A DNA stretch of 63,033 nucleotides, filler included, from Hyphochytrium catenoides (lineage: Eukaryota > Protista > Hyphochytriomycota), in assembly GCA_900088475.1 (NCBI GenBank). It is 10 parts of 10 records of this genome, joined end to end, with 100 filler letters (N's around TTAATTAATTAA, not from the genome) between each part and the next. Parts side by side here need not be neighbours in the genome. Positions count along the whole stretch, not along the records: positions 14,863 to 20,244 come from FLMG01004560.1; 9 more parts are not named here. One strand, given 5' to 3'. A program made the translations under genes and the position numbers. The notes beneath the pieces were generated by a model. That model had not been told where the DNA came from. It saw only the letters and a list, made by a program, of their open reading frames with translations, and did not search any database. Shown here piece after piece: positions 14,876-20,244 of this stretch (its first letter is position 1; each line of letters begins with the position of its first letter).

Positions 14876-17800
14876 CTATTCGCGTCCTGACTGGCTGGCT
14901 CAGGACCCACGTTGCCGCCTTTCTATTCTTTAGTCTCTCCACATAGGCAGCAGGAGGAGTGCCCAAGACGTTGAAGATCCTGTCCAGCTCGTTAAGAGTA
15001 GAAGAGCCTGTAGCGGAAGCCAACAGAGTCGAAGAGAGAGTGCTGATCAGAAAAGATATTATGAAGAAAGAAGCGGAGGAAAGCGGCTGGGAGATCCAGA
15101 TCACTGAAAAAACTACGGAAGAACGTGAGCAGGACTGGTCTACCTAGTTTCTGGTCGCTGCAAACAAAGGCTACGAGGAGCAAAAGCGAAGAGAGAGATC
15201 GAGGGAGAAAGAGGGAGAGCAAGAGAGAGAAAGAGAGAAAAAAAGAAAAGAGAGAGAATAAAGAGGGGGAAAGCAAAAGAGAGAGAAGGTGGCAAGACAT
15301 GAGCTAGTCGAACCTGGCCAAAGGACCTGTCTCCCCAGTAGCTCTGCCAGTATACATCCGGCGCTCCAGACGTCAATCTTCGCTCCATAATAAGTGCCAT
15401 TGAGCATCACTTCTGGAGCGCGGTACCTGGATGTGGGATGAGGTTGGCGCTCGGTCAGGGATCCAAAGAGTATAGCTGACAGAAAACAGAAAGGAAAGAC
15501 AAGACAGAGCAGAAGAGCCCAAACCTAACCTAGAGCAGCCAGTATAGTCAGAATATAAGAGGGAAGAAAGAAGAAGAACTGATGAGAAGAGCGAGATAAA
15601 CGAGATAGAGAGAAGGAATGGAGTAGGGACCATGAGAGAGTGTTTAGAATGAAAGGGAGAGAGGAGGAGAGAGGGAAAGAGGACCTACCATCTAGTCACG
15701 ACATACTCTGTCAGCCCGTCCACATTGTCCCCCATCCCTGCCGCGTTAATATCCCGGGCCAAACCAAAATCACATATTTTAACCTATGAGCATCGTGGAA
15801 GACGCATCAGATGCAGAAGAGGAGAGACGTCTACCAATCAGAGACGGAAGTATAATCGAGATAACAACCATTGATGTCAATTCCTTACAACATAGTTGTG
15901 ACAGTTCGAAGACAGGGAGCACATAGAGAGACAGGAACTCCTTGAACTGCATCTAGACAAAGCAGCCGCCAGAGAGAGAGAGTAGAGATAGATTGAGAGG
16001 CCGGGAAAGAGAGAGGAAGAGAAAGAAGAAGATCGGGACAAAAATTCTCAAGTGGCTGGCTCGCACCTCACAGTTACTGTTTACAAGGATGTTGGATGGT
16101 TTGAGATCTCTATGGATAATCTTTGCGCTGTGGAGGTAGTGAAGGCCTCGCATGATCTGGTACATCAAGTACGCCACGTGATCACTGCTCAGAGGCTGAG
16201 AGGACTTGATCACCCGATGAAGGTCAGACTCCATCAGGTCCGTCACAATGTAGACGTCTGAAGAAGGACTCTTTAGACGCGCTGATAAGAGAGACAAGAT
16301 GGTCCCATTGCAGAGAGATACACCGGGAGATAAACAAGAGCAAAGAGAGAGAGCCATATACGGGAGACTGTCCCAGTTTCAGGAACAAGAGGACAACGTT
16401 AGTGGACAAAAGTGAATCCAGAGACGAAAGAGATCGGGCTCGAAGAGATAGACCATTGTCGGGCAAGTTTAGTGCGTTAATCCATCGTCATTACCTTCAA
16501 ACTCTGCAAGCGATGGAGGGCGTAGTACGTCCCTGAGCTGAACCAGGTTGGGATGGCAGAGCTGGCGCATCAGCTTGATTTCCCGCAGGATCCGCTTGGC
16601 ATCAAAGACATCCTGCAAAGAATATTCGAGCTAATTAGCATGAAAGCGCATAGAGGGAGGCGATGCTCAAAGATAAGAGAGTCTCTAGGAGGAGTGAAGC
16701 GTTGCTCAGAGCTTCTTTCTATATAAAGCGAAGGCGTAATCATTTATCGAAAGGCGCAACTACGCGGCAACATGAGCTGCCCATCATCAGGGAGTTGAGA
16801 CCGTGTCACCAAACGATGGAGCAAGCAACAGCAACTAGAAGCGTGCGATGTATTGGAGGATGAAAAGGTACCCGAAAGACTGCCTGTATGTTCTTGATCG
16901 CCACAGTGTCTCCTGTTTCAATGTTGCTCGCCGCGATGACGCAGCCGTAAGCGCCATTGCCCAAGACCTGCACGTCGGAGCAGTGATAGAACAAGGATGA
17001 GGTAAGAGCAGATGAAGATGTGGAGTCGGTGCTCTAAAGGTAGACGCCGTCGTGCTTTTAGACTGACTCATAGTGCAGCGAAGGAGGTAGAGATCTTAAG
17101 AGGACAGGAAGCACGGCACGCAAACTAGAGCAGAGGGGAGAGGGAGAGACGAAGCGAAGGAGAGAGAGAAAGAGACAGCTGGGTAGCCCCGGACCTTGAT
17201 GAGTTGGTACTTCCTTGGTATATCAAAGTATAACTTATCCACTTTGAACACGTGGTTGTCTCTTATCAGCGCCTTCAAGCTCGTCACAGTCTCAGCCTCA
17301 CGAGGAGGAAACCTCCCGCTTTCTCCTCCTTCTCTTCCCTTCTCCGCAGCTCTATCTTTCGTAATAGGGACAAATCGTCCGCTGGAAAGCAGCGTCGCGG
17401 AATCTTCTTCTTCCTCCTCTTCTTCATCGTCATCAAGCATCTCGATGTACTCTGAAAGAGGAGCTAAAGGGACATCGCGTACGTGAGAAGACAGTTGGCC
17501 CAGAGCCTAGGCCTCTCAACACGACGATGGAAAGAGTGAAGTGCAGAAAGTCGCAGGTCGAAAAGTAAGTTGACGAGATGGTAGCAAGCAACAAGAGGAG
17601 AGTGATTTGTCAAAGAAGCTTTTCCTCTCACTCAAAAGACCGAATTGTGAATGGGACATTGGGTGAGAAGAAGGAAAGAAAGAAACAGAGAGAGCGCAAT
17701 AGAGAAGCAACAAAGAGTTGTGCAGGCGCAAGGCGTGAGGGATGGGTTAGCTAACCTTCTGGCTGGAGCTCTAATTGACTGTTGACGGTGTTATGAGTGG

Positions 17801-20244
17801 CATATGTGATCCCAAGCTTGATGCGGCCGCAGTAGACAGTAGGAGGAGCCCACCTGGCGGGACAAGTGTGGTACAGGACGAGAGAAAGAATGAGCTGCCG
17901 CAGGAGAGAGAACGAGACAGGCAAGGGCGGGGAAGAGACAGACAGGTGGGGCACGCACTCTCAGCACTACAACTATAAGATTCTCATTAAGATAATGCAA
18001 GAGAGGCTGTTAACAACAATTAATAATAAGGGAGGGTGGGAGAATGAACCAAGATCTCACTCTCTCTCTCTCTCTCTTTTCTGCGCCCTCTCACGCTTTG
18101 AACTGCCTACTACTACTCACCAATCCCTGCACGCACTGTATTGGTGAGAGAGGTTATGCCACTGGGGAATGGCTCCGTTGGCCCTTGCTTCCGCAGTCTC
18201 ATGGACCAGCGTGAGGTAAGGTGCAAGGTTGATCTTGCAAACCCCTATAAAGGATTAGAGAGGAGCCAAAAAGGAAAGAAGAAGCGTAAGAGGGTAGCCC
18301 AACAGCTAATGGGGATTATAACGCTAAAAAGGAAAATGGGTCCTTGTACTCCCTCTGTCTGGCGGGAGATGAGACTTCTAGAAGAGAGAGCTAGGAGAGA
18401 AACGCTCACCGAGAGAAACAAACTGAGAGAGAGAGAGAGAGGACAAGTGAGAAAGATCAGGAGGCCAAGCTGTGGGAAGAGTAATCCCAAACCAAGTGAA
18501 CGAGCGATGCAATTGAGAAGAAGTAAACCTGGGAAATGCTAAGTGTCTACGTCTTTTCTCTCACCAACCAGATCTTCCCTCCTAAAGCTCCCTCTGTGTG
18601 TCAACACCTCCACCTTCAGGAAGTACGATGCTCCAGGCTTTGTGCCAGGAAAGGGAAGGCGGAGATTGGCACCCCAAAAGGGCTCCGTAGTATCCTTAGG
18701 AGGCGGGAGGACAATACATAGCAGACAGAGACAGAAGGTCATTGAAGCAATACGGAGGCACTTGCTTCTAACCTGGAAGATTCGCGAGGACCAAAGCCGG
18801 GCAAAGACCTTGTTCCAGCCGGATTCTAGTCTCTCTCCTCCGTTTGACCTCTCTCTTTCTCTCTCTCTCTCTCTCTCTCTCTCTCTCTCTCTCTCTCTCT
18901 CTTTTCTTTTCCTCTTATGATAACTGTGCCTCTTCTACCTTCTTGCTCTCTGTACGATCCACCATAGTTGGCCCTCCAGAGCCTCCGACGAGGATCGTCT
19001 TCAATGATTTGTACAGTGAGTGCTTCTTGGCGGCCTGTTCCGGTGTCACTCCGCTTCCTACAGACAAAAGACTCTCCAGTTAGAGACAGAAAGGTGTCGG
19101 GAAGATGAGAAGCCCACCCTGGTGGTTACCGGAGAGCTACCAAGATGCTAAATGCAGAGAGCAAAAAGAAAGCGAACGTTGCTCGCGGGTCGAGGAGAAC
19201 AAGAGCTTCAGAAACAAAGGACACTATTGCGCAGCAGATTTTTTTCAGCTCGGCGTTAGACAAGATAGATAGCTTGATCGGACTGCTATGGACTACGGTT
19301 ATTTACCTTCAACACCAGTGCTCTCCGTCCTATCGGTGGATGTTCCCTCTATCACGCTGCATTTCACGAAGGGAGAGATGGACGCGCCAGGATCCTTTAC
19401 TCGGAGCCCCTGGCCAGCAATAACTTGAATATAAATAGTGCCTAAGAGAGGCAAGCAAGTAAAAGAGGAGTGGAAGAGGCACGGTTTGGGTGCTGTTAGC
19501 ACGAGTCAATCGTAGACATTTAGCTGAGATTTGAGAAGTACGTGAGCGTGCACTACTTGCTCCTTTGCAGAAGGTTGCCACGGCTCATCCTGGCCCCTTT
19601 CCCTTACCTGCAGGTATCGGCTTCAACACGCTCTTTGTCTCCACGGGGAGCTTTAGGGTCATCTGCGAGTCTTCCTGCAGTCCTCCAAAGGCGACGGAGA
19701 GAGCCACAGGATCACCTTTGATCCTCCAGCGCACGATCCTCCCCTTCTTGTCCAGCCGGAGCCTGTGTACCCAACGCTGGGTCACTGTCCGTCTATTATT
19801 TGCTTGATCGTGAAGCACACGGAAAGTCTCCTTGCCTGCACGTGGAAGTTAAAGATAAGAAGTCAACAAACTTTATATGACATATACTATGTCGGGGCTA
19901 AGCGCGGCCAGCTCTCTCCTATAAAGCAAGACGTTATAAGGAGAGAAAAGAGCCTGGAGGGACATGGAAGTGGAACTAAGAGAGTCTCCGTAGAGACTCA
20001 AAGTTCTTGGCACAAGAGTGGACATATAAGAACAGGGTAACGGCTGCGGGCCAACTTAAGGCTCCTGTCTAAGATTGAGAGGCCTATCACACAAGAAGGC
20101 TGCTCTTAGAGATTGGAGCTCAAGACAAGGGGAGAGAGACACTACGCAAGAGGCCATCTTTGCTCTTTGACGTCTATCTCCTCACCTATTGTGGTCACGA
20201 CTCTCTCTCCTTGCTCTTCCGTGTCTTCCACACTTTCTACAGTG
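14876..20244 (-). CDS. MAP kinase (TEY) with N-terminal C2 domain; truncated at both contig ends
   Basis: Kinase exons: 17451-17195, 16967-16872 ([13 protein letters not shown]), 16612-16495 ([11 protein letters not shown]), 16257-16067 (HRDLKPSN), 15783-15689 ([15 protein letters not shown]), 15426-15314 ([13 protein letters not shown]), 15007-14876. C2 exons: 19441-19307, 19057-18939, 18694-18565, 18244-~18133, 17853-17756. Further upstream exons: 19835-19608 and 20244-20186. Confidence 0.9.

Follow-up and report, generated by a model that had tools for sequence, protein, structure and literature searches.

A predicted gene joining a C2 domain to an ERK-type MAP kinase in a contig of Hyphochytrium catenoides

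We analysed a stretch of DNA of 63,033 nucleotides (nt), hereafter the window, which joins 10 parts of the genome assembly of Hyphochytrium catenoides (GCA_900088475.1). The gene described here lies on the minus strand of the part that comes from record FLMG01004560.1, a piece of ~5.4 kb at positions 14863–20244; coordinates throughout are those of the whole stretch. This piece probably carries one gene in which a C2 domain is fused to a mitogen-activated protein kinase (MAPK). From the N to the C terminus, the predicted product would consist of a region predicted to be beta-rich (exons E-1 and E0), the C2 domain (E1 to E5), an acidic linker (E6) and a MAPK of the ERK type with a TEY activation loop (E6 to E12 and beyond). 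The C2 domain and the kinase would become a single polypeptide through the removal, as an intron, of a gap of 304 nt at 17755–17452.

Gene model and kinase half

Exon borders were set from the sequence and verified by script, with the minus strand translated in three frames. The translation yields a series of short, protein-like open stretches, and these assemble into a model of 14 exons (E-1 to E12) running from 20236 down to 14863. All 13 introns are of the GT..AG type, and the script found the reading phase to be consistent at every junction. Exons are 95–257 nt long with a GC content of 0.48–0.56, while introns measure 166–350 nt, have a GC content of 0.46–0.54, contain stops in all three frames and are mostly pyrimidine-rich on the sense strand. 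The piece truncates the gene at both ends, E-1 being open to 20243 and E12 being cut at 14863. The peptides quoted in the initial annotation are all present on the minus strand, where it had placed them. Its reservation that a junction near 18133 needs a weaker donor can be dropped, because E4 and E5 can be joined in phase through a strong donor, GTGAGT, that comes straight after 18121.

In the kinase half, the catalytic motifs can be read directly in E7 to E11. The glycine loop (GxGxxG, here GNGAYG) and the VAIK lysine are found in E7 (16967–16872), the helix C region with its glutamate in E8 (16612–16495), and the stretch from the hinge to the catalytic loop (HRDLKPxN, here HRDLKPSN) in E9 (16257–16067). 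DFG and the activation loop with TEY follow in E10 (15783–15689), and E11 (15426–15314) leads from the P+1 loop and APE to helix F. Across the E10/E11 junction, TEY is followed by VVTRW/YRAPE, which gives the TxY motif together with the P+1 sequence of MAPKs. The last exon of the model, E12 (15007–14863), runs from helix G into the MAPK insert region until the edge of the piece, so that the C-terminal common docking (CD) region falls beyond it.

Pfam, PDB and Atlas searches were made exon by exon, and for the kinase half they agree with the motifs. The Pfam Pkinase family matches E9 (E = 8.9e-18), E11 (2e-9) and E8 (1.4e-3). Among solved structures, ERK5 is the best match to E9 (7e-27), with ERK1/2 and plant MPK4/6 at 1e-22 to 1e-24; indeed, all 60 listed PDB matches of this exon are MAPKs (ERK5, Arabidopsis MPK4, ERK1, MPK6 and ERK2, in that order). 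E12 aligns to the helix G/MAPK-insert region of p38 gamma, and MAPKs account for 13 of the 14 PDB matches to this exon. A word search with the open reading frame (ORF) around E9 returned 156 kinase fragments, the best of them with 62–70% identity; the named relatives are 'MAPK 1/3', with 'MAPK 15' and HOG1 scoring lower. The same search found no close relative of the kinase half in the protein collection, only distant MAPK fragments. Because the motifs are complete and both PDB and the named relatives point to a MAPK, the predicted product of E7 to E12, with its start in E6, is an intact ERK-type TEY MAPK, as had been proposed from first inspection.

The C2 domain and the region upstream of it

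Exons E1 to E5 very probably encode a C2 domain. E1 (19441–19307) would supply its start, that is, strand 1, loop 1 and strand 2. Searched alone, it matches Pfam C2 (PF00168) with an E-value of 0.0024 and 18.5 bits over profile positions 3–40 of 104, and the E-value becomes ~0.02 after correction for the 10 exons scanned. Its seven PDB matches are individually weak (E 0.19–1.9), and all seven are C2 domains (Munc13-1 C2B, RGS3, synaptotagmin-1 and -7, dysferlin). In the alignments to Munc13-1 C2B, RGS3, synaptotagmin-7 and dysferlin, the match begins with strand 1 and continues in register through loop 1 and strand 2. With these domains E1 shares the Asp of 'KD' and a 'P[YF]VK' motif; it differs from them in having a Ser in place of the Asp of 'SDP', and the C2 domain as a whole differs from them by an insertion of ~40 residues between strands 2 and 3, encoded by E2.

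E3 (18694–18565), the core of the domain with the '..EPFWG..' strand and the loop-3 region, was recognised by a different approach. With a language-model method, the three best named Atlas clusters for this exon are PF00168 (0.85, 0.83 and 0.82, scores rated as a lead only), and two further C2-named families come after them in the ranking. E4 (18244–18121) would add the strands up to 'QWHNL', and E5 (17853–17756) the last strand, 'GRIKLGITY', with 17 residues after it. Taken alone, E3, E4 and E5 each gave no match to Pfam C2. Compared by eye with what we take to be the C2 consensus ('nPvWnE..f.f' and 'L.i.V.d.d....d..iG' in core strands 3–5), E3 to E5 match in order and spacing through '..EPFWG..L.LPF', 'YFLKVEVL....F.REDLVGV..I.L', 'QWHNL' and 'GRIKLGITY'. 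The C2 likeness of the predicted protein exceeds chance, with two separate exons, E1 and E3, giving it by independent methods. The initial suggestion of a C2 fold spread over five exons is thus supported by E1 (Pfam and PDB) and by E3 (Atlas).

The Ca2+-dependent type of C2 domain, that of synaptotagmin and classical PKC, has five acidic Ca2+ ligands in loops 1 and 3, and this set is incomplete here. In loop 1, the tool alignments show the first Asp kept ('KD') and the Asp of 'SDP[YF]' replaced by Ser ('ISPF'). In loop 3, two of the three positions that we presume, by eye, to correspond to Asp in the consensus are Thr and Arg. Canonical Ca2+ binding by the predicted domain is likely lost. Substitution of several Ca2+-binding Asp positions had been part of the initial annotation; the change in loop 1 is seen in the tool alignments, and the two in loop 3 by eye only.

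No family match was obtained for E2 (19057–18939), whose ~40 residues are inserted in the loop that links strands 2 and 3; it may be a cassette exon. We retained it in the model because its GC content of 0.55 is exon-like and because, with E2, the flanking introns have normal sizes of 249 and 244 nt, against a single intron of 619 nt without it. E1 also has a second possible in-frame donor, GTTGAA, whose first base is 19313 and whose use would move the end of E1 to 19314, in phase 0. This donor would join E1 to E3 in frame, skipping E2, and would give the canonical spacing of strands 2 and 3. With the 19313 donor, E1 and E2 would both finish in 'DRTES' plus two residues. The idea that E2 arose by duplication of the last part of E1 was considered and rejected: the shared 'DRTES' is not significant (66 of 2000 protein shuffles), and neither is the likeness at the DNA level.

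As had been expected from the first inspection, more coding sequence lies upstream of the C2 domain. Both E0 (19835–19608; 228 nt, 76 codons) and the partial E-1 (?20236–20186, open in frame from 20243, with a GTGAGG donor in phase 1) are in phase with E1, and the gene runs past 20244. For E0 there was no Pfam match worth the name, and its Atlas features gave unnamed clusters only; the metagenome contigs and the word search each returned 0 relatives. Modelled alone with AlphaFold2, E0 gave a low-confidence, beta-rich structure (predicted local distance difference test score, pLDDT, 53). E0 and the C2 module E1 to E5 (606 nt) each consist of whole codons and each lie between phase-1 introns. 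This 1-1 symmetry is as expected of modules gained by exon shuffling.

Could the locus be an artefact or decayed? A mis-assembly in the 304-nt gap might have joined two loci, or the N-terminal exons might resemble a C2 domain only by chance or as a pseudogene, and not be translated together with the kinase. Such an explanation would fit the small size of the contig (5.4 kb), the failure to find a significant relative for any exon in the N-terminal half, the lack of a family match for E2 and the in-frame path that skips this exon. However, the piece is uniform throughout, with a GC content of ~0.5, a steady strand asymmetry, and a GC content at third codon positions that hardly differs between the N-terminal (0.60) and the kinase exons (0.61). 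Also against it are six consecutive N-terminal exons that are open, in phase and bounded by canonical splice sites, with no frameshifts or internal stops, and a C2 signal that comes from two independent exons. We regard an artefact or decayed locus as very improbable.

The junction between the C2 domain and the kinase

Whether the C2 domain and the kinase belong to one protein depends on the 304-nt gap between E5 and E6 (17451–17195). E6 encodes the acidic linker, in which 12 Asp/Glu residues follow one another without interruption (D3 E8 D), as well as the N terminus of the kinase; the predicted linker, of ~55 residues, is probably disordered. The 17756/17451 junction is in phase (phase 1), so that both the acidic linker and the in-phase splice of the initial annotation are borne out. 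We scored the splice sites with a leave-one-out weight matrix, using as a benchmark six introns of the kinase half which must be spliced because they interrupt the conserved kinase core. The E5 donor (GTTAGC, phase 1) scores 6.2 bits, which places it in the top 7% of GT sites in the piece and within the range of the obligatory kinase donors (0.0–7.2). The E6 acceptor scores 5.7 bits, in the top 5% of AG sites, and the obligatory kinase acceptors range from -0.2 to 7.4. The gap itself has a GC content of 0.48, is 68% pyrimidine on the sense strand (61–76% in the kinase introns) and contains stops in all frames; it resembles the introns in length and composition. The 1-1 symmetry of E0 and of the C2 module likewise counts for a single gene.

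The serious competitor is that the gap separates two neighbouring genes of the same orientation. The first of them, comprising the region of E-1 and E0 and a C-terminal C2 domain, would then end at the in-frame TAG at 17753–17751, which directly follows the E5 donor if that donor is left unspliced, and an ordinary single-domain MAPK would start at ATG 17440, within E6. The AG at 17453–17452 would be a chance site, the acceptor of an intron in the 5' untranslated region (UTR), or a spliced-leader trans-splice acceptor, as in tightly packed tandem genes. The stop and the ATG sit just where such a model needs them, and an ORF opening at 17440 would place a plausible MAPK N-terminus of ~57 residues before the kinase core. 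A strong acceptor just before a start codon is, moreover, the pattern of trans-splicing organisms, and counts for two genes. The 114-residue ORF from ATG 17440 had no record in an exact look-up.

Several features of the gap argue against this explanation. Two genes would have to fit a 3' UTR, a spacer, a promoter and a 5' UTR into 311 nt, when introns in this gene average ~270 nt, and the gap cannot be distinguished from those introns in length or composition. Three coincidences would be needed: that a top-7% donor should fall in the two codons leading up to the stop, that a top-5% acceptor should precede the ATG by 11 nt, and that the two should agree in phase. The stop itself carries little weight, since donors in this gene are often followed by one: directly at E4 and E10, and two codons on at E1, so the TAG after E5 need not mark the end of a gene. 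Direct reading of the 304 nt found neither AATAAA nor ATTAAA, and thus no canonical poly(A) signal. An upstream ATG at 17475 opens a three-codon ORF (ATG TCC CTT TAG, 17475–17464) 35 nt before ATG 17440, in what would be the 5' UTR of the kinase gene. A scan of the gap for bacterial promoters and terminators came back empty, and such a scan does not apply to a eukaryote.

On the other side, a number of points weigh against the fusion. With ATG 17440 only 11 nt downstream of the E6 acceptor and a stop right behind the E5 donor, dividing the locus into two genes costs nothing in sequence; several GT and AG sites lie nearby, and some in-phase pair is expected by chance. For the linker exon E6, 0 relatives were found by HMMER (1.84 billion representatives), 0 by word search and 0 in JGI metagenome contigs, and the searches with E6 or E0 revealed no orthologue with a C2-MAPK architecture; the failure of the linker searches to find a C2-MAPK relative also counts for two genes. 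The C2 assignment, too, is made without any single exon reaching the Pfam gathering score (18.5 bits for E1, against 22). MAPKs are normally single-domain proteins (PMC4177888), which likewise favours two genes. Finally, it is gene structure alone that joins the halves into one polypeptide, and the gene is a predicted model. Weighing both sides, we regard two adjacent genes as a real though unlikely alternative, and a single gene fusing the C2 domain to the MAPK as the probable reading.

Possible role, related kinases and minor features

The location and specificity of MAPKs, which are textbook single-domain kinases, usually come from docking motifs and separate scaffold proteins. In the proposed fusion, the localisation that scaffolds usually give would be built into the MAPK itself. 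Because it appears to keep only two of the five canonical Ca2+ ligands, the C2 domain would bind a membrane lipid or a partner protein without Ca2+, which is the mode of the C2 domains in novel protein kinases C (PKCs) or PTEN. Being flexible, the acidic linker would give the tethered kinase access to its MAP2K and substrates at the place where the C2 domain binds, and the kinase would still be switched on when both T and Y of TEY are phosphorylated. It seems to us somewhat more plausible than otherwise that an undersampled eukaryotic lineage has an ERK-type MAPK permanently tethered by its own Ca2+-independent C2 domain, with a further beta-rich module at the N terminus; the failure to find relatives of either the linker or the N-terminal exons points to a source lineage that is poorly sampled.

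If the fusion is real, it would represent an ERK-type MAPK that carries its own targeting domain, one that probably works without Ca2+, and thus another way to wire a MAPK cascade to the membrane. It would also offer a simple test case for the effect of tethering on MAPK signalling, and would add to the few MAPKs with accessory domains, such as the PAS-MAPK of oomycetes. Its present value is limited to that of a well-supported gene model, as distinct from a demonstrated protein.

With ERK1/2, ERK5/MAPK7 and plant MPK3/4/6, the predicted kinase shares the full set of CMGC motifs, TEY followed by VVTRWYRAPE, and a MAPK-type helix G and insert. Those kinases have no folded N-terminal domain, whereas here at least 330 residues (upstream region, C2 domain and linker) would precede the kinase core, and over the most conserved exon identity reaches only 62–71% at best. 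PKC and other AGC kinases also combine a C2 domain and a kinase in one chain, as predicted here. In those kinases C2 gives membrane targeting, and the Ca2+-independent C2 domain of novel PKCs likewise lacks the canonical Asp set. The present kinase, in contrast, is of the CMGC/MAPK class and TEY-regulated, and has no C1 domain, pseudosubstrate or AGC tail.

The PAS-MAPK of oomycetes (PITG_01203 and its orthologues) is a protist MAPK with an N-terminal accessory domain (PMC3019232). It has in common with the predicted protein a sensor or targeting domain N-terminal to a protist MAPK, and it is evidence that fusions of this kind exist and can be maintained in evolution; the domain there is PAS and the loop TEH, where here they are C2 and TEY. 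The 'rogue' MAPK Q19243 of C. elegans carries an extra His_Phos_1 domain (PMC4177888 supplement), and is likewise a rare MAPK-class kinase with a foreign domain, although the domain and the organism differ and the case is known from an architecture catalogue only. No description of a C2-MAPK was found in the literature; architecture databases lay outside this search, and the result is not proof of absence.

The contigs of three relatives of the E9 ORF (L001–L005) were searched with every exon by tblastn. No C2 exons were found upstream of the MAPK genes in these contigs, and those MAPK genes are unrelated to the present one; in L003 and L004, the upstream neighbour of the MAPK gene is an endoplasmic reticulum (ER)-retention receptor on the other strand. 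The metagenomic MAPK at L001:2423-3476 (ENA ERZ4198739, NODE_10410) contains an exon that aligns with E9 over its whole length (residues 1–63, 71% identity). This gene probably shares both intron positions of E9 and may come from a distantly related, intron-rich eukaryote.

The introns of the kinase half have donors that are very degenerate after GT (GTCCGG, GTACCT, GTGCGA, GTTCGA), even at junctions that the conserved core makes certain. These degenerate donors, together with the pyrimidine richness of the kinase introns (61–76%), may help to place the lineage. A coccidian-like source, at first suggested by the CT-rich introns, was not upheld, as the kinase is of the classical ERK1/2 type and the searches turned up no relative from apicomplexans. 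The intron between E2 and E3, the sole purine-rich one on the sense strand, contains a (CT)27 microsatellite, on the plus strand at 18849–18902. Lastly, the intron between E11 and E12 holds imperfect AG-rich arrays with a period of 10–29 at 15189–15287.

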